NCBI GenBank assembly: GCA_002269645.1
Contig: NIVC01004496.1
Location: forward strand, 1 to 44,137
DNA: 44,137 nucleotides
Direction: 5' to 3'
Source: Macrostomum lignano
Lineage: Eukaryota
Position 1 is the stretch's first letter. Each line of letters opens with the position of its first letter. A program made the translations under genes and the position numbers. Shown here piece after piece: positions 1,235-43,130 of this stretch. The notes below the pieces were generated by a model that saw nothing but the letters and a program-made list of their open reading frames with translations, was not told where the DNA came from and ran no database searches.

Positions 1235-4200
1235 ACGCTGCTGCTGGTTGAGCGCAGTCTGGAGCGCAGTCTCTCCAGCCACAGCCTGCCGACTCGGGCG
1301 TGACGGAGCCGCTTGCGGTTCACTGCAGCCTGCTGAAGGCGGCCCGAGCTGTGATGAAGAAGCCAATAGCTGGCAGACAGGAACCGGTGCTGAGCAGCTT
1401 CACAATGCGAGTGAAAGTCAGCCTAGGCGAATCTCTGCCACCGCAGGCCCGGCAGAACTTTGTCAGCCAACTGTCAACAATTGGCCGCATACGCGAGCGT
1501 CGCTGGCTGGTGACTTCAGCGCTGGGAGGCTCCGAGGCGGTCAAAATGGCCACCGAGCACCCCAGCCTGGCACTGTCACCCGTCGGCTCGGTCGCCGTCC
1601 GTCTCGAGGGGGCATCCCGGATGACGCCAGCTCAGCTGCCACCTTCCGAGTCGGCCGCCTTCTGCTTCCTGCCGCTGCCATCTGGCGCTGAGGCTCCACC
1701 GTTCCCGGTGCTTTTGAACGGCGCGTTTGCGCTCGACTCGAGCCGGCGCCACCTGCTCGAGGCGACAGGCGACGACAGGCGGGGCGAATGGAGCCCCGGC
1801 CAGTGGAACGCCTGCCTGTTATCAGGCGTTGTGGCGCCCGCCTATTTGCGCTGCCTGGAACTGCTGGCAAAGGTGGAGCCCGGCCGAGAAGTTTCTCCGT
1901 CTCTGGCCGCAGGGAATGGTGAGTTGCTATTCGATTTTCTAGTATGGAAGAGTTTTTTCTAAACTTTCGAATAGCGAGTTTTGAGAACCGTTTGGAAATA
2001 TTTTCAAAAATATCCGAACGAGTAATTGCTATTCATGATGCTTGAGTCTATCTTGTGCTTAACCTATTTTGTGCTTAACAAATGCTTCATCAGCGACTTT
2101 TGTGTAGTTTAAGCTGTGGACGAGTCCTAAAATTTGTGTCAGCTCACCAACGCACCATTTCTCATGTACTTTAGATCGGCCGACTGTGGGAGCCGCTTGC
2201 CCGCCAGTTGTACAAGTCGGCATTTAAATTAGATGGTCCAGCCGTGTTCCCCTGTTCCGACAGCTGGCTTAGTTTTGCCAGGAGCGAATTCGCCGAACCA
2301 AGTCTGCGCAGCTTCACCAACGTTGCCAAACACTTGGAGAGTCTGATTGACCAAGTCTCTGATGGAATCGTCTGGTTAACCGCTGAAGTGCATGCAGCCG
2401 CGATCAAGTACGCCGGTCGAGAGTTTCAATGCCGCATTCTGTCTGTAGAAGACGCCGTCCTGCGTATACTGAATTCTACTGAAAAGCTGTGGCAGAGCGA
2501 TACGATATTTTCGCGCAGTAATCGATCGCACTTTGAAGAATTTATTTCGTTTCTTTTAAAACTGATTGGACGGCCCGGCTTTCAGTTTGACTCCTGCAGC
2601 GCACTGGTTACGCAGAAGGTGCGCGATAAAATGCGCACCACATCTGCATACCCGACGGTCGTGGAAGCCTAAAAAGGCCAGCAGACCTGCTTAGTCCCAA
2701 GTGCCGAGCTGCCAGCCTGTTCTGCCGCACACCAGACTCCGCAGATGCAGCGATGTTTCCTCGAAATGACCTGTGCTCCGATGATTGTGTACTGAAAGCT
2801 CTGAACAACCTTGGCTTGCGCACGGACATCACTGGACTGGAACTCGAGGAGCGAGCAAAAAGTGTTTCCAAGTTGCTGAACTCTCAGCTTCAGTACAATC
2901 GTATTCGCAGTCTGCTCTACTACCTTCGGGGAATGAAAAGTTCGGAAAAAAATTACGCTTTGTCTCAGTTGTCTAGGATTGCTTTCCTGCCTGTTAAGGG
3001 AGACAACTGTCTGAAATATCCACAGAATCTGTTCCGCGAGCACCTCGCAGATCTTGTCGGTCTAAACTACGATGTGCTTGACGAAACCGTTCTAAACATT
3101 ATGATGTGGATGATGTGCTAGTTGAACTGGGCGTGCGCGACTCTGTTAGCTGGGATCTGGCTTGGCAGCAGCTGCAGTCGCTGGCCAGTAGTCATTCATC
3201 AGATTCAGATCTTTGCTACACAGATATATGTGAAGCTGTTTACCGGCACCTCTCTGGCGATCAGTTTTCTGAAGAAATTAAACGCATGAAAAAGGCTCAA
3301 ACGTCGAACAGCCGGAAACGATTAGTATTCACGAAACCGGAGGCTTCTTGCTTCCACAGCAGGTCTCGTTTGAACCCACTGATACAGAGCTGCCGCCTCA
3401 TCTTTTCACGTTGCGATACCTTCGAAAACCTAAAAAGTGTGCACCATTTCTACATGCTCTCGGCGTTGCCACAAGGTTTGATGCCAGAAGTTATTGTCAA
3501 GCTCTTGCGCGCATCCATCAGCAAAGCAGCAGCGCTCCGGTATCACCGATAGTTCTACGAAGCTGCGTTGAACTACTTAACTGCTTAATCAGTCACCTGG
3601 ATACTGACGAAGATGTACCTTACTTAGAGGAGATTTTTGCACCTGACAGATCTGGAGCACTGAGACCCTGCTCAGAACTGTGCTACAACAATCTGCCATG
3701 GTTAAGCCAACTAGACCCTATGCCTGGTCTATATTTTACGCACAAGTGTCTGTCCTATGAGATCTGCGAGCGCCTTGGAGTGCCAACTCAACGAGAACAG
3801 ACCCTCCGACAGATTTGTGAGCCTTTTGGCCAAAGCGAGAATCTTACCACTCGTCTAGAAGGAATCCTAAGGGGTTACCCTCTTGGCATTGAGCTCTTCA
3901 AAGAACTTATTCAAAATGCTGACGATGCGGAAGCAACAGAAGTCGTGTTTGTAAATGACAAGCGCAAGCTACCTGGAAAGCAAGTGCTGAGTGATTCCTG
4001 GCATGAGTTGCAGGGGCCTGCACTTTTGGCGTTCAGCAACTCTGTCTTCACCGAGTCGGACTTGAAGGGCATTCAGAGCTTGGGCGTTGGATCAAAGCAG
4101 TCTGAAGCGTGGAAGACTGGCCGTTTTGGTGTTGGATTCAACTGTGTGTACAACGTTACAGACGTACCACAGTTCATTAGCAATGGCGATACTTTCTGTG

Positions 4201-7200
4201 TTCTGGATCCTCACTGCAGGTACACACATCTCGCCGGTACAACTACTCCAGGTGCTAAATATTCACTGACCCAGAGACACAAAAAAATGTTCAAGGACGC
4301 GTTGGAGGGCTTCCTACCAGGACGTCTGCAACAGGCTGGATGCACAATTTTTCGATTACCCTTGAGAACTCCTGATCAAGCGGAAAAGTCCAAGATCTGC
4401 AGCTCTTCAGTCAGTAGCGCTATGATCGAAGAACTCTTCGAAGAATTCCGAAGTGAAATTGCCAGCACAATGCTCTTTCTTACAAATGTCCGACATCACC
4501 TTGATGGAGGTGCACCTGGACGGAACGATCACAGAGATTTGTGTAGCGAATGCTCGAGCCTCGACATCAATAGGTGATTTTTCTGCATTCAATGCATCTT
4601 GTCGCAGCGTTGGCATGTCGCTGAACAGCAGCGGGTGCTGCACTGACCAGTTTGACATGCGACACAATTGCTTACACTCTGGAGATTAGCGAGAAAGCGG
4701 ACAAATTAGGCAGTAAAAAACAAGGCTCTGTCGCTACTGAAAAATGGATGATAGCTCAGTGTGTGAGCCTGCCTCAGAATGGGCTGCTGCTCAACTGAAG
4801 GAGCTTGAGAAGAAAGTTGCCGCTGGAGGCTGGCCAATCCTTCCAAAAGTAGGCGTCGCGGCCAGGCTGTCTAATCAGAGTACTCACAGAGATACGGAGA
4901 TTTATCGCGTGTTCTCGCTTTTGCCACTGCCAATAAGCACGGAACTACCGGTTCATATTAACGGTTGCTTTGTACTTGACCCGTCAAGGCGCGCTCTGTG
5001 GTGCGGTCATTCAGTGGACGCAGAGACGCAGTGGAACGATATGCTCACATGTGAACTTCTTCCCCACTGCTATGCAACGATGCTAAACGCAATCAAACAG
5101 CAGCCTGACCTTTCACTTGATTGCTACTGCTCTTTGCTACCAAAACTAGGAGAAAGTAGTTCATTGTGGACCAAAATGGCAAATAGGTTGTATGGAGAGC
5201 TTCTGACAGGCCGATGGGCTCTGCTGCCATGCCAGTCTGGAGCGAATAGAACCGTTTCTTGGCTTCCACTTGCCACATCGGAGGAATCAGTTGACGGCAA
5301 GACATGCTTTTTAGTGGGAAGCGCGAGCATACATGATCAGCGACCAGTGCTGATGCAGTTGGGTATTCCATTGATCGTTAAAAAGTTGGAACATTTAATA
5401 TCGCGCTTTTGCATGCTTAACTGCAGTCGAGAAACAAAGAGCTACATTCCCGTTTTGAGTCCAGCAGTTTTGTCAAACTATCTAAATGGGCCACTGTGTG
5501 CAAGACTTCGCAGGGCTCCCAATGTCAGTGGAGGAAACGCTTTTCCAGAATGCAGAAATGTCGCTTGTGTGATCGAATTCATTACGCGATCATACACGAC
5601 GGCCTCAGATGCGCATATGAAGTGCAACTGCTTACTGGAACTCCACTCAACTTGGCAGCTGACAATGTCCTTGAATTATTTTCAACAGAGAAAGCGGCAT
5701 TCCTGACCTCATGGTCAGAACGAATTTTCTCCGATCCAAATGCTCGAAAAATGTTTGTTCATAAACTCGTTCTAAAAATTTTCTCCGAAAATTTTGAGTC
5801 GTACAAAAAGGCAATCGAATCAAGACTTTTCAAAGAGTTTGGAATTGCTGATTTCAGTGAGCTCCTTGCCAAGTTTTTCCCTGATTTGATCTGCTCAAGT
5901 AGACGCTTGATTCCTAACATAAACTCGACTGGTGATGCTTTTGTTTCTGACGAATGGTTGACTAATGTTTGGGAATTCCTTTCATCGAAATTATACTCTG
6001 AATCGCATCAGTTAAATAAACTCTCTTGTTTATCAAATGCAGCTTTGCTTCCTATTGAGTCGGGCTCAAATGACTCTTCTCAATCGAAACTTGCAACAGT
6101 TTCTCTTTTGCCGTGTGTTCTATGCGTAGATGGATGTGCATCGCTCAGCAATCTAAACATCGATCTTCTCGCTGCTCTTGATGAGCTGCATTGTCCGAAA
6201 ATCAACTCGGACAATTCTTTCTTGCGGAGCCACTGCGGCTCGGTAGATCGACCGGCTAAAATGCTCCGTGTTTTTAATTGTATTCTAATGAGCAAGTCAC
6301 CTAGCAGCAGGCAAGCTTTCGTTGTTTTACAATACATCCAAGAAAACTGGCAGTCTTTGTTGTCGGCTTACAAAGTTGAGCAGCTGTGTACAATTGTAAA
6401 GAAGTTGCCGATATTCGTCACACTCGATGGTCAATGCGTCAGCGTAAGCGACAAAACTGTCTACGTCTTGTCAGCTAAGATAGCCACCTCTGACATGCAC
6501 TTATGGAAATTGGATCAATCTACGGTTTTACTTAAACAAGAAAACAGCTAAAGAACCTGTTTACTTGCCTGAGCTTTTCCAATTTGGACCAATGGGGTGC
6601 GTATGCTGCTTTCATTTTGCCAGTTTTTCTGAATTTTCTAACAGTACGAAGTTTCAACATATCGATATGCTTCAGAAGAAAGTTTCCCAGTTGTTGCCGG
6701 AACAAAAGCTGAGAGCTGAACAGAAGAATGTTTTGGCTCTTCTAAAATCCACAGAGATTGTGTTCGCTCATGCAGATGGCGTTTAGCCAGTGCGTTCTAT
6801 GATGACAGCGTTGAACTCTTCAAGCATATTGTTCCGGAGGATGAGCTTTTGCCTTCACACTATCGACAGCAAAGTATGCGAAAGCTATTAAATCATGCTG
6901 GACTGATTTCCGAATGCTCAGAAGACCTACTCCTTTCGTTTGCTAAAAATCTCGAAGAAGAGGGGCAGAGAAAATTTACGGCCGACGTAACAAAAAAATC
7001 TGAAGCCATAATATCGTACTTAAAACAACCAGGTTCCGCTCTAAGTGATAGTTGCTTGGGCCGCCTGGCAAACATTTCATTCGTTGTCTCTGATGAGCTC
7101 AATGAGCTACAGTCTCTTTTTGAAGTCAAGCAATCAAAAATGCTTAAGCTTAGAGACTCAGTTCGGTTCTCTAATAGATTTCTGTGCTGGACGGCAAGCA

Positions 7201-9727
7201 CAATCTGTCCAGAGTACGTGAAGCAGATCAGTCAGCATTTTGGCAAGCTTGCAGTACGCCAGGTTCCCACTGCCGATGACTTCAAGAAGCACTTGAATAA
7301 TTTGCTTTCGAGCAGTTCTTTTCTGTCTGTGCGTCTATCAGAAGAAAATGTGGAACTTAGGAAAAAGATTATGAATAAAATTTACCAGCATATCAAAAAA
7401 AATTTACAATTAAGTGAATTTGCAAGTCTTGAAATATTAAGGCGCGGTCCGTTCGTCATCGTTGATAATGGAAAGTATCTTCTACCCGCCAAGTGCATTT
7501 GCCTTGTTAGTTCAAAAGAAATACCGCCTTATATTATTTCTTGTCCGCGAGAACTGATGCAGTTTTCAGAAGTATTCGAAACTTTTGGCGCGACCAGAGA
7601 AATTACGATGAGTCAAGTATACTATGCGCTGCAGTGCTTGAAGGAAAAATCAGACGCAAGTTATGCTCTTGGAGAAGAAGAAATGAATGTAGTTTCCGAA
7701 TGCTTATCTGTTATGACTAATCTGCTAGATCGCGATGAGCAAAATTTCAGTCAGAAAACAACACCGCTGTATCTCACAACTAGCTCTAAACATAAGGACA
7801 AGCAGGTTCTCTGTATGGAGAATGTGCTGAACCTGGCTATCAACGATGCACCGGACTATTACAAGCGAATTGGAGGTCACTGCGAGTTACATGTACAGCT
7901 TATAGATATCGAATTTGCAAATCTTAACTCGGACAAACAGAATATGTTAAACAAATATCTGCGCGACAATCTGGGTGTCCGGACACTGAGTCAACTTGTC
8001 AACGAGCGCCTGGCAGACAACAGTCAGCACTGTAAAATAGATGGCTGCTCAGTTGCTCAGACTGTGAAGAAGAAGCTGATTCATCCTGATATGTTGAACG
8101 GACTGGTCCGAATTATTCAACATGCGGATGGTCGTGTCGGTTAACCCTTGAGACTTGTCATGACAAGCTGAAAGCTGCTCTGGTCGAGCTGAAAGTACAG
8201 TGCATGAAGGACTTAATGTCCGTATTATCAGTAGATGACAAAGTATTCGTTGACTCGCAGCAGGAAAAGAAAAGTTTTTTAGTTGAGAAAACTATCTACG
8301 TGAGGCACACAGACAGTGACTGTGGCAATGACTATATTACGTTATGGTACAAGGAGCTCACAGTTGTTGTTAATTCCTTTGTTTCTAGTGTGCTTGGATT
8401 TAAGACGGATATTTGCGGCAATATGCAAACGTGGCTGCGTTTTGAAGACTTAACCTTGATAGCAACGGAGCTTGACAAAGACAATGTAGCCACTTGTTCT
8501 TTTGGCCATGAAGGTGCAGAGCAAGAGCGCTGTGACGTTGCACTTGGCAGTTTGGTTCCGGCCATGCTTCGCAGTCAACTCCAAGAACTTACCAGCTTCC
8601 AGCATGACCGTCTACTGCAGTTTGAGCCCGGTGAGTTAGTAGCTCTGCACCAACGGACTGAGAATGATGACACTGATACTTTCGTGCTTGCTAGAGTAGT
8701 TGCTAGGAGTGACAGGAGTAGTAGTAACTCGTGGCTGCAGGAGTACACGGTTGAGGTGGGAGCCAATGGTACTGTGCGCAGTACAGCACTAGAACTTTTT
8801 AACATCAGACAGCAGAGAGAAAGCTTGGCGGACATAGGCGACTCCAGTGAAGAAGATGCTGCGCTTCAGGAGGAACTTTCGCGTCTGCTGCAGCAAGGTC
8901 AGTCGCTGCCAGCCTCAAGCGATTGCAGACTCGCTGTTAGAAGAGTGGTTCAGCACTGCAGTCCTGGCCGACATTCAGCAACCTTTGATCACAGAACAGA
9001 AAGCACCAGCAGTCTATCGTTTGTGCAAGCCTTGCACAATTATGTAAATACACAAGTTGCGCGCATTGGATCCAATTTTGTGCGCGAGATGCTCTCAAAA
9101 TGGCAGAGTGATGCTGATGACGTAGGAACTGCCGGTCATTTGCTATTAGAGTTGGACTCACCTGATTCTACTACGACGTTGTCAACTAGGAAACGACGCG
9201 CTCCAACAGCCGCTACATCAGGTGGAGAGTTCAGTTTTCCGGCCAAAATTTTCCGCTCTTCTTGCAGTACATCCTGCATCAGCTCTGCCACTGTCTCGCC
9301 AGGTCGCGATATCGCCCTGCACTATTGGCGCGTTGCTCGCGACGACCACCGCGCCGGCGGTAATGACATACACAGAGATCAGCGCCTAGCAGCGAACTGG
9401 GCTGTCTACAAAGCGCATCAGGCGGCTGAAAAAGCGCTCAAGGCGGCGGTTTTGGCGTCCGGCAAGCCGGCAGTAAAGAGCCACAGGCTGCAAGACAATC
9501 TTGGCTTGATTGTCCAACAGGACATGCAGCGTCGTCTTTTGACTTTTGCTGGCGCTTTGACCCGATCGCAGGGCTCCGTTGACTGTCGCTACCCGGGCGG
9601 ATCCAGCGACCCGTCGGCGCTGAGTCGCAAGGATGCGAAGTCTGCGCTTGAGGCGTCCGAAAATATTTTAGAAGAAGTTCGCACTTTTCTTCTCGAGTTG
9701 GGCTTCAGTGATGCTGAGCTGAACTAA
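1235..9727 (+). CDS. SACS: Sacsin-like gene, 3' portion (5' exons outside the window). Two exons (~1235-1918, 2175-9727); the reading frame is interrupted by ~12 single-base shifts.
   Basis: ORF fragments join into sacsin motifs: AFCFLPLP..PVLLNGAFALDSSRRHL, FGQSENLTTRLEGILRGYP, ELIQNADDA, KTGRFGVGFNCVYNVTDVP, PVHINGCFVLDPSRRALW, FEPGELV, and HEPN-type HQAAEKALKA..RYP. Intron 1919-2174 (GTGAGT..TTTAG) joins FLRLWPQGM to IGRLWEPLARQLY in phase 0 after one frame correction near 1880. The 5' boundary (AG at 1233-1234) is tentative. Confidence 0.9.
3820..4400 (+). other. SACS: GHKL/HSP90-like ATPase subdomain at the start of the last sacsin repeat region
   Basis: ELIQNADDA (Bergerat box I) and GRFGVGF (box III) are intact in ORF 3348-4577. 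Confidence 0.9.
9300..9710 (+). other. SACS: C-terminal HEPN domain of sacsin
   Basis: YWRVARDD..NWAVYKAHQAAEKALKAAV..SHRL..CRYP..A..ILEEV at the end of ORF 8204-9727. Confidence 0.85.
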
Positions 9728-15165: not shown

Positions 15166-15232
15166 TTTAAAAGTAGTAGTGTAAATTTTTTTATTAAAAG
15201 GTTTTATTAAAGGACTAAATAAAAACACTTAG

Positions 15233-16842
15233 ATTACTGCACTCGATAAGCCAAGGATTATTGCTATTAATAAACCAAGGACTACTGCACTCGATAAACC
15301 AAGGACTATTGCTCTTGGCAAACCAAAGATTACTGCACTTGATTAATCAAGGATTATTGCTATTAATAAACCAAGGATTACGGCACTTGGAAAACCAAGG
15401 ATTACTGCACTCGATAAACCAAGGACTATTGCTCTTGGCAAACCAAAGATTACTGCACTTGATTAATCAAGGATTATTGCTATTAATAAACCAAGGATTA
15501 CGGCACTTGGAAAACCAAGGATTACTGCACTCGATAAACCAAGGATTATTGCTCTTGGCAAACCAAGGATTATTGCATTTGATAGGCCAAGGATTACTGC
15601 ACATGATAAACCAAGGATTATTGCACTTGATAGGCCAAAGATTACTGCGCTAGATAAACCAAGAATTATTGCACTTGATAAACCAAGGATTATTGCACTT
15701 GATAAGCCAAGGATTATTGCACTTGATAGGCCAAGGATTACTGCGCTTGATAAACCAAGGATTATTGCACTTGATAAACCAAGGATTATTGCAGTTGATA
15801 AGCCAAGGATTATTGCACTTGATAAACCAAGGATTATTGCACTTGATAAACCAAGGATTATTGCACTTGATAAACCAAGGATTATTTCACTTGATAAACC
15901 AAGGATTATTGCACTTGATAAACAAATATTGCACTTGATAAACCAAGGATTATTGCACCTGATAAGCCAAGGATTACTGCGCTAGATAAACCAAGGATTA
16001 TTGCACTTGATAAGCCAAGGATTATTGCACTTGATAAGCCAAGGATTACTGCACTTGGAAAACTAAGGATTACTGCACTCGATAAACCAAGGATTATTGC
16101 TCTTGGCAAACCAAGGATTACTGCACTCGATAAGCCAAGGATTATTGCTCTTAATAAACCAAGGATTACTGCACTTGGAAAACTAAGGATTACTGCACTC
16201 GATAAACCAAGGATTATTGCTCTTGGCAAACCAAGGATTATTGCACTTGATAGGCCAAGGATTACTGCACTTGATAAACCAAGGATTATTGCACTTGATA
16301 GGCCAAAGATTACTGCGCTAGATAAACCAAGGATTATTGCACTTGATAAACCAAGAATTATTGCACTTGATAAGCCAAGGATTATTGCACTTGATAGGCC
16401 AAGGATTACTGCGCTTGATAAACCAAGGATTATTGCAGTTGATAAGCCAAGGATTATTTCACTTGATAAACCAAGGATTATTTCACTTGATAAACCAAGG
16501 ATTATTGCACTTGATAAACAAATATTGCACTTGATAAACCAAGGATTATTGCACCTGATAAGCCAAGGATTACTGCGCTAGATAAACCAAGGATTATTGC
16601 ACTTGATAAACCAAGGATTATTGCACTTAATAAACCAAGGATTATTGCACTTGATAAACCAAGGATTATTGCACTTGATAAACAAAGGATTATTGCACTT
16701 GATAAACCAAGGATTATTGCACTTGATAAGCCAAAGATTACTGCACTTGATAAACCAAGGATTATTGCACTTGATAAACCAAGGATTATTGCACTTGATT
16801 AATCAAGGATTATTGCTATTAATAAACCAAGGATTATTGCAC
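15233..16842. repeat. 24-bp minisatellite, ~67 units (ATTATTGCACTTGATAAACCAAGG), with ~5 diverged units continuing to ~16965
   Basis: Directly visible. It produces the LLHLINQG and LGLSSAII ORFs in the track. Confidence 0.97.
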
Positions 16843-16974
16843 TAGCTGAGAAGCTGATTACTGCGCTGTCTAAAAAAGAGATTATTACGCTCGCTGAGAC
16901 GTGGATTGTTGCACAACCTGAGAAAGCGATTATTGCATTAGCGGAAGTAACATTTGCACTAGCTACTTGCTGTC

Positions 16975-21187: not shown

Positions 21188-22909
21188 TTAAGCCGATTTT
21201 GCTGCACCAGTTTCCATAGCAACTACATTAGGATGGACAACCTTGGTACTCTTTTTGCCACAGCACAATTGGCCACTATTGCTCAGAATAAATTTCTCGC
21301 CATCGGCGATTGTCTCGGGCAGATCCTGACCCACAGTCTCTGGCAGGAAGTAGATCACTAGGCAGGCAAGCAGCGGTCCAATGCCAAATATCACAAATGG
21401 CAATGGCCCCCATACTGAGCGCAGCGGCAGCATCTGGGTGCTCAGGATGGCGCCAACCCTGGCCATAGTTGAGCCTGAGCCAACACCGACGCTGCGAATC
21501 ACAGTTGGATACATTTCGCTGTAGTAGAGCCACACGCAGTCAAAGGCGACTGTGATGCTTAACTTGCTTAGAACTGCCAGTGCCACGTTTGCTGCCGCAC
21601 TGCCAGACACTGACTGATCGAACACCGCCACCATGACTGCCAAGAATACGGCCGATAAGGCGAATGAAACATAGAGTACAGGCTTGCGTCCAATGCGGCA
21701 GATTGACAGTAGCATGCCGAGGAATCTGGCTGGCAATTCAACTGCCGATACGAGAACCACATTTAGAAATACGTCTCCGCCGATTGAGTCCCCAGCCAAG
21801 CTGATGCCAAAGTAGGTCATGGAGGCCGCGAACCAGTGCAGCCAACTTAGCAGAGTCGCTCTGCGCAGTCCCGGCGTTCGAAACAGATTTAAGAGGTTGC
21901 CGCCCGTGCGAATTTCGGATCCGGTATTCATTGACGCGACTGCCCGCTGCTCGTGCAGGTAGATCTCCTCGGCGCTGAAGTCTGCTGGCAATTTGTCGGC
22001 TGTTCTATTTAGACGGGCAACCCGCGCAATGACAGAATCGGCTCGTTCTACTCTGCCAGCTGAGATCAACCAGCGGGCCGATTCGCCAGATATCAGCAGG
22101 AGCAAATAGAGCGGCAAACTTGTTGCGCACAGCCACAGCAGCTGGGCCTGATAGTTTCGCTCCAAATAGGCAACCAGAGTTACCGTGAATACGCCAAGTG
22201 ACCAGCCCTGGTTGACGGTAAAGCCCCACACCAGTCTGTGCGCAGAGTCCGTACACTCGATGGTAGCCGAGTAAAGCACACTAAGCATGCCGCCTGTACC
22301 AAAGCCAGCTAGCACCATCGCTACAGCGTATAGCCAGTACACTGGAGACAGTGCCGCCAGAGCAGTTGCAAGTGTCAGATTGGCCATGCTTACCAGAGAG
22401 GCTGGTAGCCGGCCGAACCTGTCGCCAAATAGACCGTATAGGCTTGCTCCTAGAAGGAATCCGGCAAAATAGCCGGTAGCAGCCAGGTCGGCAAGGTAAC
22501 TGTTGTCGCAAACTAAGCGAAACCTACTTGCTATTGTTTCCGTAAAGACTGACCTGTCGAATGTCCAGTCGATGCATTGCAATGTAGCTACATTGCCGCC
22601 AGGCACATTAGTGCAGTTAACCAGCACGCGGCACTCATCCTCCGTAGCTTCTGCCGACCAACAGCTGCTTATAAGTTCGTTGCCAACCGTTGAGTTGATG
22701 TCGCACTGGTGCTTCATCAGCGAGGACTTGGCGAATGCGTTTGACAGCGTAACCATACCAGGGAAGGCTTGGACAAAGCAGAGACATGCCAGCAGCAGTA
22801 TCTGGTAGGGACCTCTGGGCCCCAGTAGGCCCACCAGGTCTTCAAAAGTTCTGGGTCGGCATTCCGAATCTTCGGATTTCTTCTCTACGTTTGAATCGTT
22901 TTCCGTCAT
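21188..22909 (-). CDS. SLC22: SLC22-family organic cation/anion transporter (MFS), single exon, 573 aa
   Basis: FEDLVGLLGPRGPYQ, Cys-containing loop 1 with W..LVC, GDRFGRLP, ESARWL, YFGISL, ELPA, EMYPTVIRSVGVG..ARVG, LPETVGQDLPETI; multiple hydrophobic segments. Confidence 0.95.
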   Translation of the reverse strand: MTENDSNVEKKSEDSECRPRTFEDLVGLLGPRGPYQILLLACLCFVQAFPGMVTLSNAFAKSSLMKHQCDINSTVGNELISSCWSAEATEDECRVLVNCTNVPGGNVATLQCIDWTFDRSVFTETIASRFRLVCDNSYLADLAATGYFAGFLLGASLYGLFGDRFGRLPASLVSMANLTLATALAALSPVYWLYAVAMVLAGFGTGGMLSVLYSATIECTDSAHRLVWGFTVNQGWSLGVFTVTLVAYLERNYQAQLLWLCATSLPLYLLLLISGESARWLISAGRVERADSVIARVARLNRTADKLPADFSAEEIYLHEQRAVASMNTGSEIRTGGNLLNLFRTPGLRRATLLSWLHWFAASMTYFGISLAGDSIGGDVFLNVVLVSAVELPARFLGMLLSICRIGRKPVLYVSFALSAVFLAVMVAVFDQSVSGSAAANVALAVLSKLSITVAFDCVWLYYSEMYPTVIRSVGVGSGSTMARVGAILSTQMLPLRSVWGPLPFVIFGIGPLLACLVIYFLPETVGQDLPETIADGEKFILSNSGQLCCGKKSTKVVHPNVVAMETGAAKSA

Positions 22910-24324: not shown

Positions 24325-26010
24325 TCAGCTACGGGATCGGGACTCTTATCTACGGGATTGGGACCCTTAGCTACGGAATTGGGACTCTTGGCTACGAAAT
24401 CGGGACTCTTATCTACGGGATTGGGACCCTTAGCTACGGAATTGGGACTCTTAGCTACGAGATCCGGACTCTTAGCTATGGAATCGGGACTCTTAGCTTC
24501 GTTTTCGGGACACTTAGCTTCGTTTTCGGGACTCTTAGCTTCGTTTTCGGGACTCTTAGCTTCGTTTTCGGGACACTTAGCTTCGAGATCGGGACAATTA
24601 GCTTCGGGATCAGGACTTTTAGCTATGGGATCGGGACTCATATCTAGCGGGATCGGGACTCTTAGCTACGGGATCGGGACTCTTATCTACGGGATTGGGA
24701 CCCTTAGCTACGGAATTAGGACCCTTAGCTACGGAATTGGGACTCTTGGCTACAATATCCGGACTCTTAGCTATGGAATCGGGACTTTTAGCTTCGTTTT
24801 CGGGACACTTAGTTTCGGGATCGGGACAATTAGCTTCGGGATCAGAACTCTTAGCTATGGGATCGGGACTCGTATCTAACTGGATCGGGACTCGTATCTA
24901 ACTGGATCGGGACTCTTAGCTACCTGATCGGGACACTTAGATAGCTCGTACACCATACATCATAGGAGTCATCTATCGGGATCGGGACTCATATCTAACG
25001 GGATCGGGACTCATATCTAACAGGATCGGGCCTCATATCTAACGGGATCGGGACTCATATCTAACAGGATCGGGCCTCATATCTAACGGGATCGGGCCTC
25101 ATATCTAACGGGATCGGGACTCATATCTAACAGGATCGGGCCTCATATCTAACGGGATCGGGACTCTTAGCTACAGGATTGGGCCTCATATCTAACGGGA
25201 TCGGGACTCATATCTAACGGGATCGGGACTCATAGCTACGGGATCGGGACTCATATCTAACGGGATCGGGACTCATATCTAACGGGATCGGGACTCATAT
25301 CTAACGGGATCGGGACTCATATCTAACGGGATCAGGACTCTTAGCTACGGGATCGGGACTCATATCTAACGGGATCAGGACTCTTAGCTACGTGATCGGG
25401 ACACTTAGATAGCTCGTACACCATACATCATAGGAGTCATCTATCGGGATCGGGACTTATATCTAACGGGATCGGGACTCATATCTAACGGGATCGGGAC
25501 TCTTAGTTACAGGATCGGGCCTCATATCTAACGGAATCGGGCCTCATATCTAACGGGATCGGGACTCATATCTAACAGGATCGGGCCTCATATCTAACGG
25601 GATCGGGACTCTTAGCTACAGGATTGGGCCTCATATCTAACGGGATCGGGACTCTTAGCTACAGGATCGGGACTCATATCTAACGGGATCGGGACTCATA
25701 GCTACGGGATCGGGACTCATATCTAACGGGATCGGGACTCATATCTAACGGGATCGGGACTCTTAGCTACAGGATTGGGCCTCATATCTAACGGGATCGG
25801 GACTCATATCTAACGGGATCGGGACTCATAGCTACGGGATCGGGACTCATATCTAACGGGATCGGGACTCATATCTAACGGGATCGGGACTCATATCTAA
25901 CGGGATCGGGACTCTTAGCTACGGGATCGGGACTCATATCTAACGGGATCAGGACTCTTAGCTACATCATCGGGACTCATATCTAACTGGATCGGGATCT
26001 AAGGGATCGG
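24325..26010. repeat. Intronic minisatellite: 21-bp units (GGGATCGGGACTCTTAGCTAC) grading into 22-bp units (GGGATCGGGACTCATATCTAAC)
   Basis: Directly visible; a unique ~50-bp insert is duplicated at 24933 and 25401. Confidence 0.95.
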
Positions 26011-26757: not shown

Positions 26758-28815
26758 CTGGTTGCCACCACCCGAAACTACTGGGGTTCTGTCCTGGTTG
26801 CCACCACACGAAACTACTGGGGTTCTGTCCTGGTTGCCACCACCCGAAACTACTGGGGTTCTGTCCTGGTTGCCACCACCCGAAACTACTGGGGTTCTGT
26901 CCTGGTTGCCACCACCCGAAACTACTGGGGTTCTGTCCTGGTTGCCACCACCCGAAACTACTGGGGTTCTGTCCTGGTTGCCACCACCCGAAACTACTGG
27001 GGTTCTGTCCTGGTTGCCACCACCCGAAACTACTGGGGTTCTGTCCTGGTTGCCACCACACGAAACTACTGGGGTTCTGTCCTGGTTGCCACCACCCGAA
27101 ACTACTGGGGTTCTATCCTGGTTGCCACCACCCGAAACTACTGGGGTTCTGTCCTGGTTGCCACCACCCGAAACTACTGGGGTTCTGTCCTGGTTGCCAC
27201 CACACGAAACTACTGGGGTTCTGTCCTGGTTGCCACCACCCGAAACTACTGGGGTTCTGTCCTGGTTGCCACCACCCGAAACTACTGGGGTTCTGTCCTG
27301 GTTGCCACCACACGAAACTACTGGGGTTCTGTCCTGGTTGCCACCACACGAAACTACTGGGGTTCTGTCCTGGTTGCCACCACCCGAAACTACTGGGGTT
27401 CTGTCCTGGTTGCCACCACCCGAAACTACTGGGGTTCTGTCCTGGTTGCCACCACCCGAAACTACTGGGGTTCTGTCCTGGTTGCCACCACCCGAAACTA
27501 CTGGGGTTCTATCCTGTTTGCCACCACCCGAAACTACTGGGGTTCTGTCCTGGTTGCCACCACCCGAAACTACTGGGGTTCTATCCTGGTTGCCACCACC
27601 CGAAACTACTGGGGTTCTGTCCTGGTTGCCACCACCCGAAACTACTGGGGTTCTGTCCTGGTTGCCACCACCCGAAACTACTGGGGTTCTGTCCTGGTTG
27701 CCACCACACGAAACTACTGGGGTTCTGTCCTGGTTGCCACCACCCGAAACTACTGGGGTTCTGTACTGGTTGCCACCACCCGAAACTACTGGGGTTCTGT
27801 CCTGGTTGCCACCACCCGAAACTACTGGGGTTCTGTCCTGGTTGCCACCACACGAAACTACTGGGGTTCTGTCCTGGTTGCCACCACCCGAAACTACTGG
27901 GGTTCTGTCCTGGTTGCCACCACACGAAACTACTGGGGTTCTGTCCTGGTTGCCACCACCCGAAACTACTGGGGTTCTATCCTGGTTGCCACCACCCGAA
28001 ACTACTGGGGTTCTATCCTGGTTGCCACCACCCGAAACTACTGGGGTTCTATCCTGGTTGCCACCACACGAAACTACTGGGGTTCTGTCCTGGTTGCCAC
28101 CACCCGAAACTACTGGGGTTCTGTCCTGGTTGCCACCACCCGAAACTACTGGGGTTCTGTCCTGGTTGCCACCACACGAAACTACTGGGGTTCTGTCCTG
28201 GTTGCCACCACTCGAAACTACTGGGGTTCTGTCCTGGTTGCCACCACCCGAAACTACTGGGGTTCTGTCCTGGTTGCCACCACCCGAAACTACTGGGGTT
28301 CTGTCCTGGTTGCCACCACCCGAAACTACTGGGGTTCTGTCCTGGTTGCCACCACCCGAAACTACTGGGGTTCTGTCCTGGTTGCCACCACCCGAAACTA
28401 CTGGGGTTCTATCCTGGTTGCCACCACCCGAAACTACTGGAGTTCTATCCTGGTTGCCACCACCCGAAACTACTGGGGTTCTGTCCTGGTTGCCACCACC
28501 CGAAACTACTGGGGTTCTGTCCTGGTTGCCACCACCCGAAACTACTGGGGTTCTGTCCTGGTTGCCACCACCCGAAACTACTGGGGTTCTGTCCTGGTTG
28601 CCACTACCCGAAACTACTGGGGTTCTGTCCTGGTTGCCACCACCCGAAACTACTGGGGTTCTGTCCTGGTTGCCACCACCCGAAACTACTGGGGTTCTGT
28701 CCTGGTTGCCACCACCCGAAACTACTGGGGTTCTGTCCTGGTTGCCACCACCCGAAACTACTGGGGTTCTATCCTGGTTGCCACCACCCGAAACTACTGG
28801 GGTTATATCCTGGTT
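26758..28815. repeat. Intronic 36-bp minisatellite, ~57 highly homogeneous units (CTGGTTGCCACCACCCGAAACTACTGGGGTTCTGTC)
   Basis: 36-bp period; few variants (CCC/CAC, GTC/ATC); source of the 728-aa ORF. Confidence 0.97.
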
Positions 28816-31092: not shown

Positions 31093-33753
31093 CGTGACTT
31101 GGACATGGCCTCGGCAGCCTATAACAAGAAATCCGCCTCATTTAGATCAGACACGCGTTTTCTACGCATGCTGCTGACTGTACGCTGGAGTCTGCGCAAC
31201 GTCGCCAGCAAGGAGGCCGCAGAACAGTTGAAACAGGCGGCTGCACTTGAGTTCCGCGAGTTACAGGTGAGCAGTTTTGGCATTTATTTGACGCATTACA
31301 ATAGTTGAAAGTCATTATCCGACATCACGGAAAGTAGCAAAGAAATCGGTAGCATGTCCACTCTCGCGCCAAAGCCACTGGCTTTGATTCCGCTCGACCG
31401 TGCATGGAAATCTGCTTCTCGTGAGCTGAAATGGGTCCGGGGAATGTACGATATGGGTCGGCTCCTAGGGCTTTGTGCACATGCACACTGCCTAACGTTG
31501 AAAAGTCCGGCCACTTTACGCTGTGTGCTTGCGTTTGCGTATTGTAAGGTGCGCATTTACGTATTCAGGGGTCAGTGGTATGAGCATTTAGCTACAGTGC
31601 TTTCCTACTCGCTGGCTGTGTATAGACTTTCGCCTTGATTTGCGACAGTGCCTGAAGCCCCACCTGCGTCTATGTAGCACTAGTTGCAGACCGTAAGGCT
31701 AAAATTGAATTAAGAATTTAAGAATTGCACGTTTACTTAATAATGATTCGCCCTCATCATGTTTGCTCCTCAGATCCGGCTGCCAGACTCTGAGCTGCGC
31801 CACCTACTGCGCGTCGAGTTGGTTCGCGCATTCTCCTCCATCGCTTTGGAGCCGGCGCTTCTACCGCTCTTGGCCGCCGGTGAGCATCGGCAGCCGGACG
31901 TTGTCAGCGTGCGGAAGTCTTGGCCAGTCTGGTGCAGCCTATGCGTTGAAGCGTTGCACGAGTTAACAGAGCTCAGTGGTTTCAGTTCGCCGCTTCCGAA
32001 TATATGCGATTTGCTTAACGTTATTCAAGGCATTGAGGATATTATTGTTACCCAGCTGAGAAGCCGCTGGTCTAAGCTGCAGGCGCTGGAGTTCATCGGA
32101 CGCCGATCGACCCCTGCTACATCAACCGCTGCTGTTACTGTCTCTGAATCTACTACAGCGTCCGTCCCACCTGCCGTAGCTCCAATCATGCAGTCTTCTG
32201 TAGAAGCTGCTAGCGATCGTCTGCAGGTGCCGCCGATGATGTCCTCATTAGTGCGCCCTTCATCGGAATCAGCAGCGTCGTCTTGCCAGGTAGGCTTCAG
32301 CAGCAGCGACTCCGGCCTGCTAAACTATTCGACAGTCTTGAACTCAACGCAACCATCGGGCGCTGCACCGTACGGTCACGTTCAGCAATCAAGTCCGATG
32401 GCGATACCGCCTCTCATGTCGATGCCATTTTCTGTCTCAACCTCCTCTAACTGCGGTTCTTCTGCTCAAGTTGTATTTCCCCAACCGCCGCCTCAGTCGT
32501 CACCACTTCCGGCTTGCCCAGTAATGGCGGCTTGCTTTTCAGGAAATGTAGGAGTAGCCCCATCATTGCCTGTGTCGCCTCATTTAAACATTTTCCCTCC
32601 TATGGACTTATTCGCACAGCCTTTGCCACCTCTTCCTGCTAAGGCTTCCTGTCCTATGCAAATCCGTCTGTCAGAAACAATTTCGGCTGAGTTAGCTTCT
32701 GGAACTTCTACATGTAAAGCTTCTGTAATAAATCCTGCGATACCCAGCTCACGTGTCACGACTTCGACTTCAGTAGTTGACTCTGGAACAGCTGCACCGT
32801 CTATTAATGAAGTAACAGTTGCGTCAGCTGTGACCACCACTTCCTCTGCAACCGGTTCGGATAATTTGCTACAGGCTGCACCAAACTTAAAATATTCCGT
32901 TAATGCCACAGCTTCTTCATTGCTTAGCTCTACCGGTACCTGCAGCTCCACCACTGTTGCTTCTTCTGTCACAGCTGCTGCTTCATCGTTGAGCTCTACC
33001 CGCTGCTCTACCCCTGTTGTAACAACAGCTTCCAAAGCTTCTACTTCGTTGCTAGACGCTTTCAGAAACTCTGCTTCCGGTACTGCTGCTTCTTTGTTTG
33101 GCTCTTTTAGAGTTTCAACTTCTAACAGCTCTGTTCCTGTCACATCCGCGTCGGTTAAAAAATCGATTGCAAGTACCTCTACCCTTGGTAGCGAATCGAC
33201 CACACTGACTTCTGTCAAAATTGACGCGACAAAAAACAAACCCGAGCTGATCGCTGCCTCGGATGCGTTAGCACGGAAAAAGTCATATAAACCCATGAAG
33301 TCTGCCTCTAAACAAAAGGAATCTATCGTTAATGCTCAAAGGTTAGCCAAAACCGCGTCGGTTAAAAGTAAGCAAAAATCATCTACGTCTGCTTCTACTG
33401 CCTCGCTGAAAAGAAAGTACAGCGCACGTACATCCGTCTCAGGTACTGCAGTGCACAGGAAGTCCAGCGCACGTACATTCGTCTCAGGTACTTCAGTGCA
33501 CAGAAAGTCCAGCGCACCTACTTCTGTATCAGACAAATCCAAGTCTAAACACTCGTCAACTTCAGATCTACATCAACATAGAAAGCGTCGAAATGAAGGC
33601 CCATCTAGCCAATCATCTTCATCAAAGATTAACAAGGCTGTTATAAATATGGCCACAGCAGATAGAAACTGTGCTTCCTCGCATTTAAACGGTGAACTTT
33701 TATACTTTAATGATGAAATCGAACTAGAAGAGGGCGAAATTGTATCTGATTGA
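31093..33753 (+). CDS. Spliced protein with an N-terminal helical region, long S/T/A/P low-complexity region, basic patch and C-terminal EEGEI motif. Exons 31093-31266, ~31312-31548, 31774-33753; 5' end unresolved.
   Basis: Sites TGCAG|, CAG|GTGAGC, AAG|GTGCGC and CTCCTCAG|ATC are all phase 0 (the 31311 acceptor is weak). The terminal exon is ~2 kb with no stop and ends DEIELEEGEIVSD*. Confidence 0.75.
33421..33535 (+). repeat. 45-bp coding repeat (SARTSVSGTAVHRKS, ~2.5 copies)
   Basis: Visible in both DNA and translation. Confidence 0.75.
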
Positions 33754-39056: not shown

Positions 39057-42000
39057 ATGAATTCACCCTTAATGCCGCCGTTTAAACCTCGCTGTTCAAA
39101 CTCGCAATTCCAGGCGTTGAGGCACTGTCAAACGCCTTCATTATCGCTGTCGGAGAGAAGCTCCGGGCCAAAAGACAATAATAACATTGCCAACTGCAGC
39201 AACAATAATAATATTGGCTCGGCTTCTCCAATTAAAAAGAAGAAGAAAAAGGTCACCACCGCCGCTGCGTCTGGAGGCCTCAATCAGACAGCCGATTCCA
39301 TGGCTTCGGGTTCGGCCGGCAGGTTTCATCCAAATGTTGTTAACGAGCGCTACGTTGGCACAGAGGCTTTGAAACAGATCCGGGTGCCCAAAGTGGCGCA
39401 TAGCTCCAAGGGTGACTAAGCTAATAACCAATTTAGCCTTAGTAAATAGCTTTTTCAGGCTGTAGACTACTTACCTTTCTTCTTTCTATTTGCAGAATTT
39501 CTGCGCAGCGTTGACCTAAATTCCAACGAGTACAAGCACGACATTAACTGCATCATATCGCGCGGCTTCTTAAATAAGGAATTAAGAAGCAAATTTTCCC
39601 CGTCAAAAGTATTTGCTATCGGCAACAAGAGCCTCGGTGATAAGGTAAAAATAAGCAGTTTATAGAAATGCGCTTAGCTGGTTGCTGCTACTAGTAGTAC
39701 TATATCGAATTCTAGTGCACAAAAATAACCAAATTGAGTAATTCTGTTGTCACAGTTCGCCACCAAGAAGGCGGAGATCCAGGCCGCCATTGCCGAAGAA
39801 AACGCCAGCAATCTGGCCGCCCTGGCTGGCTCCGTCAAGCTGGATGAGCGGTACGGTTTCGTCTACCTGGCGCCCGTGCCGGACGTAATGGATCGATTGC
39901 GCGGCATTGCTGAGAACGGCATCCGCCGCGGCAACCTGCCAGACTCTACTCTGGCCATCGCTCTACCGGCGTCTCCCTGGGCCGGTACGTCGATCGGATC
40001 TCACCGAAGTTCGGCCTGCCAAAGACTGGCTGGCTGGTCATCTGTCGCTACGTTCGCGGCCGCGTCTGCTACTGGACCGAGGGCGACAGCGTTGTGGAGC
40101 CACAGCCAATGTACGACTGTCACGAGAGCGTTCGTCAGACGCTTACAGACGATGAATTGATTAATAGAAAAGCTGCAAGCATAATTGAAGCCGGATTTCA
40201 TAGCAGCCAGGTGTTCCTATTTGAGTACGGACCCGACCTGGAATTGATGGACCATCCCAGGCACGTGCTGCCTGTGGCTGCTGTTCAATTCAAGTTCGAT
40301 GGCTTGGTAAGCATTTTGGCCTGGAATTTGAACCAGGCTCTGAAGCTGTCCACTAATAGAGTCTCCCTGTTGAGACCTTTCCAGTGTCGCGTTTATGGGA
40401 CATTTCCTGCTCCCTAATTTGCTCACCAGCAAACGCAGACTTGCCTCTTGAATCTAGGCCATTCGTCATCAACAGTGAAGCTGTGATGCTTGAGTTCGAG
40501 CTCAGCGCACGCCCTGTAGGAAACTTTTCTCTGCTTACGATATTTGTGTTTATTAATTTGCATCTTGAGCATCTGTCATTTATTGAGAACTAGGTATCTT
40601 TAATAAGTTAATTTTTTGCATCGCTTTTAATAGATTTACGGATAGATTACTAGTAGATTACTGATTAGAATAGGCAACCTTCGCATACAAAGCATATTCT
40701 GAGACATCGAATAGTTTATCCCAAATCCCGTGCACCAGATCAGGGACCAGTGCTTCAAGCGGAAGACCCAGCCGACACTCGACCGCAAGCAGCCAAAGCA
40801 ACAACAACAGGAGACGCAGGCGCAGCAGGTTCAACAACAAATGCAGCAGGATCAGAAGGATGAAGCTGAGACGCTGGAGCATGCGCCTAAACCTGAGCAG
40901 AAGCAGCAGGAAAATGCAAAGTGCTCTGCAGCATCAGCTGAAGCCGTGTCCTCCTCCGCCGAATCTTCCACTGAGTCGAGCCCGATTCGTAGCCGAAGTC
41001 AACGACGGCCGCGGCCCGTGTGCCCCGATCGGCAAGATTGGGTGAAGAAATTCAACGACGGCGCCTACCTTGTTGGCGAAGTCCTGCTGCCCCTGCTGCC
41101 AGCGGGACCCAGCCTGAAGCTCGGCCTGGTCTCGCTTGAGAAAACGCCCTCCGTGCTGCCATTTCTGCAGCTCGGCTCGCTGCCGTCGGCCACCCCCTGC
41201 CGCGTTGTCGACTCGGCCGATCTGGAGGCCCGCCTGGCCAACTGTGGCGTCTCCCTGACCGAGGAGAAGCCCGTCTGCCGCCTGGCCGACTCCAGCGCCG
41301 GCTACGTCAGCTACCTGGCCGGACTGTTCGACCCGTCTAACGCCGCCCGGGCCCGGACACTCTGCGAGATGCTGATCACCAAGGACTGCCTGCTGCTGGC
41401 GCCCATGACCGAATCGGCTGACGGCGCCGGCGCGCTCTGCTATTTGGTGCCGTCGCAGTCGGCGCTATCTAAGCGGCTTCAACTAGACAGCGCTACCCTG
41501 CTGGGCCGCACGAAGAATCTGATTCACGTGCTGATCTGGCTGCCCATTCCCCGGCGCCAGTTGCTCTGCCAAGGCTCGACCGACCCGGGCGCGCAGTGGG
41601 CGCCAGTCTGCCGTTCAACCGTTCGATGCTACAATCTGCAGGACTGTTTCAGCGGCCTGGCCGACCGGATGAAACAGGCGGCCGAGGCTATCGGCAAGCA
41701 GCGTATTGAGGCCGCCGCTAAGGCCGCCCAGGAGCAGGCCAAGCAGCTGGAGAGTCGGGATCCCAGGGTGCGCTTGGCGGCGGCCAGGTCGGGCGCTAAA
41801 CCCGTTTCTGCCGCACCTGTGTCTGCTCCACGGGGGTCTGCCGCACCTGTGTCTGCTCCACAGGGGTCTGCCGCACCTGTGTCTGCTCCACAGGGGTCTG
41901 CCGCACCTGTGTCTGCTCCACCTGTGTCTACTCCACTGGTGTCCGCCGCACCTGAGTCTGCTTCATCGGTGTTTGCCACGCCTGTGTCATTGCTACGGGA

Positions 42001-43126
42001 TTCTGCCACACCTGTGCCACCAGATCCACAGGTATCGGCTGTATCGGCTGTACCTGTGCTAGATCCACAGGAATCAGCTGTACCTGTTCTAGATCCACAG
42101 GTATCGGCTGTACCTGTTCTAGATCCACAGGTATCAGCTGCACCTGTTCCAGATCCACAGGTATCAGCTGGACCTGTGCCAGATCCACAGGTATCAGCTG
42201 CACCTGTTCCAGATCCACAGGTTTCAGACTCGCTGATCGCAGCATCTACAGAAACACCGGTGCCTGTCACATCGAAATCCGTTCACCAGTACCTGCCGCT
42301 CAGAATAAATCTGGGAAACCGGTGCCTGCAGTCATTCCTGGTATCAGCAGCCATAATAGCGGCAGTAGGGCTGCTGCTAGCGACAGGTAAGTCTGTAATC
42401 GCATTTTGTATTTCGCATTTGCATGCATCATAGAGGCAGTGAATTTTAGTACAATTCAACCTGTTTGAATCGCGCAGGCCGAGCCGCAGTCAGGACAGGT
42501 ATCGCAGCAGCGACCGAGGCAGCAACTATCGCAGAAACGACAGCCACTATAGAAGAAGCAGTCGTAGTCGTCGGATCAGTAGCAGCAGCAGCAATAGCAG
42601 TAGCAGCAGTAATCGTAAAATCAGCAGCGCCATAGAAAAAGCAGCGACAGCAGAAGCCGTCGCAAAAGCAGCACCAGTGATAGAAGACGCAGCAATAGTC
42701 GCAGCCGAAGCAGCAATCGCAAGGCGCAGCCGAAGCCGTGAGCGTCGCCATAGAGCGCGCAAAGAGCAGAAAAAACCTGACTGTCCTGCGGAGCCTATCG
42801 CCGATTACCAGCCCGACTTCGCCTATCCTGCCGCCGCGCCGCCCTCTCTAAAGCGACGTCTCACAATGGAGGAGTCGCTCCGCCTGTGGGACGCCGAGGA
42901 GACGGCTGTTGCGGCCGATGTTTTCAATAAATTCAACTTCTTTCTGGCCAAGCGGCGCCGGACAAGCCAACAAGCTGATCAACCGTCGGACTCTTCAGCC
43001 GCCGAGGCCAGCGCGAACGGCGAAGCCTCCGACGCCGCCCCCGCCGCTGCCCCAGAAACTCCCAAGGCTTATTGGACTCTGCTTACTAAGCCAGAGTTTC
43101 TATCTTTTGTAAAGAATTCCTTTTAA
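39057..43126 (+). CDS. TASOR: TASOR-like protein (DUF3715 pseudo-PARP + SPOC-like domain + Pro-rich repeats + RS-rich tail), ~1,100 aa. Exons 39057-39411, 39496-39644, 39756-40306, ~40715-42386, 42478-43126.
   Basis: STLGHRSTGVSLGRYVD, EPQPMYDCHES and SQVFLFEYGPDLELMDHPRHVLPVAAVQF match recalled human TASOR ILGSPSMGVYLSRYAD, DPTPKHECHVS and TQYYFYEYGFDELRRRPRHVCPYAVVSF. Splice phases 1, 0, 0, 2 are consistent after -1 corrections at ~39953 and ~42284. The exon 4 acceptor is uncertain. Confidence 0.85.
39496..40306 (+). other. TASOR: DUF3715 / PARP-like domain coding region
   Basis: Motifs as above; PARP catalytic H-Y-E positions appear to be replaced (YGFVY, GVSLG, QVFLF). Confidence 0.85.
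41030..41560 (+). other. TASOR: Putative SPOC domain coding region
   Basis: Follows the pseudo-PARP domain as in TASOR; pattern WV..GAYLVGEV..LPF..LP..YLAGLF..LCEMLITKDCLLL..LCYLVPS..HVLIW. Confidence 0.55.
41808..42228 (+). repeat. Two blocks of 30-bp coding repeats (AAPVSAPQGS x~4; VPVLDPQVSA x~6)
   Basis: Visible in ORF 40730-42433. Confidence 0.9.
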
Positions 43127-43130
43127 TAAA
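43125..43130 (+). promoter_or_regulatory. AATAAA overlapping the stop codon of the TASOR-like gene
   Basis: TTT TAA TAAAG. Confidence 0.4.

Follow-up and report, generated by a model that had tools for sequence, protein, structure and literature searches.

The vertebrate proteins TASOR (FAM208A) and TASOR2, the scaffolds of the transposon-silencing HUSH complex and of HUSH2, carry a pseudo-PARP domain (Douse et al. 2020; PDB 6TL1). Of the human proteins with a PARP fold, only TASOR has an extended beta8-beta9 loop of 14 residues, and silencing cannot do without a tyrosine in that loop, Tyr305 (Douse et al. 2020). The family to which this domain belongs, DUF3715, has an early origin: TASOR-like proteins with the order DUF3715-SPOC-DomI occur throughout metazoa, TEX15 being specific to vertebrates (Schöpp et al. 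2023, PMC10578480), and DUF3715-SPOC proteins have been described from Branchiostoma (Appel et al. 2023, PMC10111866). The labels DUF3715, 'TASOR pseudo-PARP domain-containing' or 'TASOR-like' likewise already stand in UniProt or NCBI on proteins of Macrostomum lignano, Schistosoma, Calicophoron, Lottia, Brachionus and Argopecten. Here we describe a member of this family encoded at 39057-43126 on the forward strand of contig NIVC01004496.1 from the Mlig_3_7 assembly (GCA_002269645.1) of M. lignano, a free-living flatworm; this 44-kb contig is the whole stretch of DNA analysed and is called the window below. An earlier note, made from the letters alone, had placed a TASOR-like gene here in a probable flatworm, which the source bears out, and had treated it as possibly undescribed in its lineage. 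That suggestion of novelty does not hold in light of the published metazoan distribution and the existing labels: invertebrate TASOR-like proteins, including those of flatworms, are on record, and what is new is one family member and a correction of its annotation. Our literature searches turned up no study that connects HUSH or TASOR with Macrostomum or planarians.

We consider it likely that 39057-43126 (+) is a gene of M. lignano that encodes a compact and divergent TASOR-like protein. As the earlier note had anticipated, the gene is hidden by introns and a one-base frameshift: no single open reading frame (ORF) covers it in the ORF listing, and the public gene, BOX15_Mlig000723g14 at 40109-42635, begins downstream of the frameshift in exon 3 and encodes a 647-aa 'hypothetical protein' (P0003) with no Pfam domain on record, a truncation that arises because the one-base deletion falls inside the pseudo-PARP domain. 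The locus is also an actual example of a conserved domain that public annotation missed through a single-base error or lesion in Mlig_3_7. Three-frame translation together with splice-site inspection yields a model whose introns are all GT..AG and which, after repair, reads as a single frame of 1,100-1,170 codons ending at TAA 43124-43126. Two proteins from the independent ML2 assembly, UniProt A0A1I8H9D3 (P0001) and A0A1I8H023 (P0002), both named 'DUF3715 domain-containing protein', are near-identical to the product; once the shift is repaired at 39960, residues 1-352 match them at 100% identity. Word-seeded protein searches brought up three proteins only, all from M. lignano. The M. lignano annotation was drawn from a genome-guided transcriptome, using StringTie/TACO and mapped de novo transcripts (PMC5730564), and since the gene model derives from this transcriptome-based annotation, there is indirect evidence that the locus or a near-identical copy is transcribed.

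The DUF3715 domain carries this assignment. The gathering cut-off of the Pfam family PF12509 (DUF3715) is 28.5 bits, and the product scores 33.0 bits (E 7e-8) when the frame is repaired at 39960 and 38.7 bits (E 1.3e-9) when it is repaired at 39953; the unrepaired downstream fragment reaches 26.1 bits (E 9.5e-6), just below the cut-off, and full-length P0001 has no Pfam DUF3715 match, so that family membership by this profile is borderline. A phmmer search of all PDB sequences had a single match, 6TL1, from the pseudo-PARP domain of human TASOR (E 2.4e-8). With the Macrostomum sequence alone, phmmer found no PARP in the PDB at E up to 10, and the Pfam scan, taken to E 1, listed no PARP family. 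Judged by these matches, the domain is closer to TASOR than to the catalytic PARPs. The DUF3715 assignment of the earlier note is therefore upheld on the repaired protein, with a Pfam score above the cut-off and TASOR, not the active PARPs it had named as the contrary outcome, as the closest relation.

An exhaustive HMMER search with P0001 against 1.84 billion representative proteins recovered 54 relatives at E up to 1e-3 (the best at 5.6e-22), nearly all of which match residues 100-352. A scan of 48 of these relatives found DUF3715 in 45, a canonical SPOC directly after DUF3715 in three, and the PIN and alpha/beta families of TASOR in six. The relatives that carry a name belong to Argopecten ('protein TASOR-like'), Saccoglossus, Branchiostoma, Dimorphilus, Tubulanus, Lottia, Brachionus, Plectus and hagfish, and those from the trematodes Schistosoma mekongi and Calicophoron daubneyi are entered as 'TASOR pseudo-PARP domain-containing protein'; none of the relatives found is identified as TEX15, in a comparison made without a named TEX15 sequence, and the TEX15 family had no Pfam match in the product. 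A profile of the DUF3715 family reaches TASOR 6TL1 at 7.5e-80 and ZAP/PARP13 at 2.9e-5, while for the active PARP14 and PARP15 the value is about 0.006; near-invariant residues of the family are present in the Macrostomum protein. The TASOR-specific loop is conserved too: its counterpart, FEYGPDLELMDHPRH at 40220..40264 (+), lines up in the phmmer alignment to 6TL1 with YEYGFD-ELRRRPRH (human TASOR Tyr303-His316, YEYGFDELRRRPRH; numbering derived from the 110-332 delta261-269 construct), and the equivalent of Tyr305 is kept. At the positions of the catalytic His-Tyr-Glu triad, a transitive alignment through ZAP suggests that the protein reads Val, Ser and Leu. In a rough neighbour-joining bootstrap tree of the DUF3715 domain, built without named TASOR2 and TEX15 sequences, Macrostomum falls beside P0004, P0005 and P0007, three short proteins without a name (77% bootstrap), and lies outside a 96%-supported vertebrate clade containing human TASOR; its grouping with the trematodes is weak (47%).

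The frameshift lies in exon 3 (39756..40306, +), which encodes the DUF3715 pseudo-PARP core and yields the PF12509 and 6TL1 matches. Its frame switches (+0 to +2) between 39940 and 39965, and any single base inserted there restores it. Across the shift both ML2 proteins (A0A1I8H9D3 and A0A1I8H023) contain DSTLAIGSTGVSL and NLPDSTLAIGSTGVSLGRYV, and because their LAIGSTGVSL requires ATC GGC TCT against ATC GC TCT in the window, the missing base is a G at 39960/61 (ATCG^CTCT, 39959..39961, +), about 7 bases from the ~39953 that had been proposed. A GG repair at 39953/54, which gives LGHRSTGV, fits the near-invariant 'LG' of the family slightly better, at 38.7 versus 33.0 bits; the ML2 placement is preferred since the closest relatives also carry LA or LS at that position. 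A second frameshift, likewise claimed in the earlier note, could not be demonstrated. If the intron at 42387-42477 is used, the upstream frame meets a stop at 42635, as in the deposited protein, and keeping the last exon in its coding frame would call for a further one-base deletion somewhere in 42262..42300 (+), where a single insertion at any point gives one open frame to 43126. The ML2-based models use an in-phase GT..AG splice at 42365..42853, with which no second repair is required.

The frameshift bears on whether the locus is a working gene. The most likely source of the exon 3 deletion is either an error of assembly or consensus or a lesion in one copy among several near-identical ones, and we lean slightly towards error. 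It is quite conceivable, if on balance doubtful, that the locus is a recently disabled duplicate, in which the deletion at ~39960 (and perhaps a second near 42280) is real in one redundant copy of the neopolyploid line DV1, with intact copies elsewhere remaining functional. The shift persists in an assembly that was polished by Pilon with Illumina and RNA-seq reads (PMC5730564), which argues against simple residual PacBio errors and leaves room for a real pseudogene; the M. lignano assembly also holds 180 Mb in near-identical duplicated blocks (>=95% identity), and line DV1 has extra chromosomes (PMC5730564). A 3-nt indel (ATLLG against ATRMLG) distinguishes the window from P0001 and P0002, and the window may therefore represent a different copy. 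Such a reading must be set against the complete identity of residues 1-352 to intact proteins apart from the shift itself, and against the open frame, free of stops, that two one-base repairs yield over about 1,170 codons. Both shifts are, moreover, single-base deletions of the kind usual for long reads, and as the same PacBio reads underlie both ML2 and Mlig_3_7 (PMC5730564), the difference between them may be one of consensus only. P0002 has an evident frame error of its own within the Gln-rich linker, which points to indel errors being common in these assemblies. Look-ups had no genomic loci on record for P0001 and P0002, and the frameshift is therefore compared at the protein level.

Downstream of the pseudo-PARP domain, the region from DWVKKF... 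to ...HVLIWLPIPRR at 41036..41557 (+) is the candidate SPOC-like domain, whose fold is supported, if more weakly than the DUF3715 homology. It has no Pfam match, SPOC included, so that the Pfam comparison of the repaired protein confirmed one of the two domains foreseen in the earlier note and left the other unmatched; in the same exhaustive search of 1.84 billion representatives its only match beyond near-identical copies was P0006 (39% identity). The latter (UniProt A0A1I8I998), a second M. lignano protein encoded outside the window, covers only the SPOC-like region, and its sequence indicates that a diverged paralogue of the TASOR-like gene exists in this species. Among TASOR-like proteins, invertebrate and vertebrate members have SPOC regions of clear mutual homology (hhalign, 99.4%), and with those of 20 such proteins the Macrostomum region forms a colinear MAFFT alignment that includes the leading Trp and the invariant Glu. 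Given a 22-sequence alignment, AlphaFold returned a model with a predicted local distance difference test score (pLDDT) of 70 (80-95 in the core) and a predicted template modelling score of 0.69. In a Foldseek comparison with the PDB this model matched the RBM15 SPOC first (probability 0.96) and the PHF3 SPOC next (0.84-0.91; template modelling (TM) score 0.57-0.61), followed by Ku barrels; taken overall, the RBM15 and PHF3 SPOC matches span probabilities of 0.84-0.96 and TM-scores of 0.51-0.61, and none reached E 0.001. Thus, what survives of the earlier SPOC claim is the position, the colinear alignment and the alignment-guided model, and what does not is a Pfam match or a strong profile comparison. 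On this footing we regard the SPOC assignment of 41036-41557 as favoured, with an appreciable chance of being wrong.

Several results weigh against the SPOC assignment and against the broader reading of the product as a HUSH-like scaffold. In hhalign, the Macrostomum pair meets the TASOR-like SPOC regions in the expected register at E 0.006-0.008 and a probability of 5-6%, which is low. A plain hidden Markov model of 23 SPOC regions gave no significant match, with 33 of 500 shuffles scoring as well as the Macrostomum region. AlphaFold supplied with only the two Macrostomum sequences produced a model at pLDDT 32, and the fold match is partly circular because the confident model was built on the SPOC regions of TASOR-like proteins. 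DomI, DomII and the PIN domain were not detected in the product by Pfam scan or in the AlphaFold model. More specifically, PIN_TASOR and TASOR_alpha-beta had no Pfam match at E up to 1 in the products downstream of the pseudo-PARP exons, and the TASOR alpha/beta family was found nowhere in the product, where a very divergent DomI could escape for want of a verified dedicated DomI profile. The missing recognisable MPP8-binding domain is a reason for caution about a HUSH-like role, and we know of no functional data on any invertebrate TASOR-like protein.

These observations would suit a protein that has a TASOR-type pseudo-PARP domain and is no HUSH-like scaffold, that is, a lineage-specific DUF3715 protein with another role (e.g., RNA binding or turnover as in ZAP/PARP13), whose downstream region is specific to Macrostomum and not a SPOC. 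Beyond DUF3715 only one other protein among the 1.84 billion representatives matches, itself from M. lignano; the sequence tests for SPOC fall short of significance; and Schöpp et al. define TASOR-like proteins by the full DUF3715-SPOC-DomI order, of which DomI is among the domains not detected here. We nevertheless judge this explanation unlikely, for a SPOC or SPOC-like domain directly follows DUF3715 in nearly all relatives, and the Macrostomum region is colinear with theirs down to the starting Trp and the invariant Glu. The weak hhalign match keeps to the homologous register, the fold comparison picks out SPOC and Ku barrels specifically, and the order of secondary structure is the same in the low-confidence two-sequence model, which is free of the bias of the guided one, and in the alignment-guided model. 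The trematodes do not bridge the gap: their downstream region matches SPOC at 94.7% hhalign probability and has no detectable similarity to the Macrostomum region. That the DUF3715 resemblance itself is a chance match, obtained by choosing frames and splice sites to fit, could draw only on the need for a sequence repair and the lack of a Pfam DUF3715 match in full-length P0001, and it can be dismissed given the score of the unrepaired single-frame fragment (E 9.5e-6), the frame that is intact in ML2, the phmmer match to TASOR at E 2.4e-8, the dozens of relatives (E down to 5.6e-22 against the 1.84-billion-protein library) and the nearly invariant family residues.

Read as a TASOR-like gene, the locus encodes, in order, a PARP-like (DUF3715 / 'RDTS') domain that is presumably without catalytic activity, a linker rich in Gln, a probable SPOC-like beta-barrel of great divergence, a long disordered tail that includes the decapeptide repeats and the Arg/Ser/Tyr-rich tract, and a short conserved C-terminal segment. 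By homology, such a product would most likely act as a nuclear, non-enzymatic adaptor in co-transcriptional, RNA-linked transposon repression, the pseudo-PARP domain serving as the effector element and the SPOC-like domain as a protein-docking module. A nuclear silencing function and a HUSH-like role of this kind are plausible on the strength of that homology. The 'HUSH-type' label of the earlier note goes further than the product allows with its undetected DomI, DomII and PIN domain, and a HUSH-like complex would at this stage be a conjecture; no gene for a HUSH partner (MPP8, Periphilin, SETDB1 or MORC2) lies within the 44-kb window. A far-reaching version, which we hold to be quite improbable, would see in the protein a minimal single-chain HUSH core, with the pseudo-PARP and SPOC domains fused to a Periphilin-like, self-associating Arg/Ser/Tyr-rich tail and a short helical C-terminus, dispensing with both DomI/MPP8 and DomII/PIN. 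If that were true, RNA-coupled transposon silencing by these proteins would be older than the vertebrate complex with its three subunits and could do without it. With an identified TASOR-like gene, M. lignano, a repeat-rich neopolyploid that is transgenic and amenable to RNA interference, offers a handle on whether transposons are silenced through the pseudo-PARP (RDTS) domain outside the vertebrates.

The remaining features of the gene fit the splice model, whose exons have G+C contents of 42-61% versus 34-41% in the introns. Exon 1 (39057..39411, +), delimited from the ORF listing and three-frame translation, starts with the ATG at 39057 and ends in phase 1 at the donor AAGG|GTGACT; it encodes a low-complexity N-terminus with a lysine run, and residues 1-118 are identical to P0001 and P0002. 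Past intron 1 (39412-39495, +; 84 nt), exon 2 (39496..39644, +; acceptor ...TTTGCAG|, donor AAG|GTAAAA) opens the extended DUF3715 / pseudo-PARP domain with EFLRSVDLNS..., which aligns with the N-terminal portion of this domain from 50 relatives, and intron 2 (39645-39755, +; 111 nt) separates it from exon 3. Intron 3 (40307..40738, +; 432 nt, 41% GC; donor TTG|GTAAGC, acceptor CACCAG|) is supported by P0003 (NCBI model) and P0001 (ML2 model), in both of which FKFDGL runs straight on into IRDQCF. An extra exon within it at 40360-40515 (SLPVETFPVSRLWD...) fits in phase and splice sites; it was dropped, being absent from the NCBI and ML2 models, having no Pfam match and not being needed for the SPOC alignment.

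The long exon (40739..42386, +) encodes the linker, the SPOC-like region and the repeats. Translation of its first part, 40739..41035 (+), gives the Gln/Ser-rich linker, presumably disordered, which has no Pfam family and no relatives in the exhaustive protein search. About 60 residues after the SPOC-like domain are common only to P0006 and have a pLDDT below 50; then come two 30-bp repeat blocks, the Arg/Ser/Tyr-rich tract and a 90-residue C-terminus. The repeat blocks, found in frame by Tandem Repeats Finder within 41807..42267 (+), at 41807-41943 and 42041-42267, encode Pro/Ser/Ala/Val-rich decapeptides, and the coding score favours frame +2, which has no stops. The deposited locus protein lacks 20 residues of these repeats, and the copy number therefore differs between transcripts and genome or between gene copies. 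A minus-strand 213-aa ORF at 41629-42270 lies wholly inside the GC-rich coding repeats and is regarded as their by-product, most likely no gene. The last intron (42387..42477, +; 91 nt, 38% GC; donor CAG|GTAAGT, acceptor GCGCAG|) is used in the NCBI model, and P0003 spans its junction (...LLATG|...). The last exon (42478..43126, +) holds the Arg/Ser/Tyr-rich tract and then the conserved C-terminal 90 residues (42854-43123), which are identical to P0001 and have a coding score of +18.4 in frame against about -10 in the other two frames, before the TAA at 43124-43126; an AATAAA polyadenylation signal, read from the sequence at 43125..43130 (+), overlaps this stop codon.

Elsewhere in the window, a sacsin-like gene at 1248-9727 (+), with a SACS domain (ORF 3348-4577, PF25794, E 2.6e-70) and a C-terminal HEPN (ORF 8204-9727), is split over at least nine ORFs in differing, partly overlapping frames, a split that introns or further assembly indels could cause. 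An intronless 573-aa ORF at 21188-22909 (-) encodes an MFS/SLC22-type transporter (Sugar_tr, E 2.7e-26), and the annotated upstream neighbour at 31111-33753 (+) encodes a Ser/Thr/Ala-rich protein of 711 aa with no Pfam family. Tandem arrays at 15232-16843 (24 bp x 67) and 24329-25997 (21/22/43 bp x about 77) fit the simple-repeat-rich M. lignano genome. An array at 26758-28815 (+), made of 57 copies of a 36-bp unit at 98% identity, falls within an ORF of 728 aa, and its unit encodes the 12-residue WLPPPETTGVLS; it may represent a repeat protein, or else a satellite whose frame stays open by chance.

Set beside the known systems, the Macrostomum protein shares with ZAP/PARP13, PARP14 and PARP15 the ADP-ribosyltransferase fold superfamily, the family profile reaching ZAP at E 2.9e-5. 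With TEX15, which acts in the vertebrate piRNA pathway, it has the DUF3715 fold family in common; it is set apart by the description of TEX15 (PMC10578480), in which TEX15 domains replace the SPOC, whereas the Macrostomum protein has a SPOC-like region. The trematode proteins of Schistosoma mekongi (KAK4468083.1) and Calicophoron daubneyi (CAL8100443.1) offer a DUF3715 domain and a downstream SPOC-like region within flatworms, yet the identity is only about 30% in DUF3715 and between the downstream regions no similarity is detectable. The best non-flatworm relatives are the invertebrate TASOR-like proteins of Argopecten irradians (XP_069100931.1), Saccoglossus (LOC102806952) and Dimorphilus (DgyrCDS3440), at E 1e-17 to 1e-10 and about 30% identity over DUF3715; like the Macrostomum protein, in which the last domain is probable, they combine an N-terminal DUF3715, a linker and a SPOC-type domain, and show no catalytic PARP signature. 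Against these, the Macrostomum protein is short (about 1,100-1,170 aa against 1,200-3,800), its Gln-rich linker is longer (about 140 residues), its SPOC-like region has diverged much further (hhalign about 5%, no Pfam SPOC) and nothing recognisable follows that domain. Compared with vertebrate TASOR and TASOR2, it is without a detectable MPP8-binding DomI, homology in the Periphilin-binding linker, DomII or PIN. The parts that it does share with these scaffolds are the homologous pseudo-PARP domain (E 2.4e-8), a probable SPOC-like domain at the same position, the PRHV motif and the beta8-beta9 loop with its essential Tyr, which reads FEYGPD in Macrostomum and YEYGFD in human TASOR.

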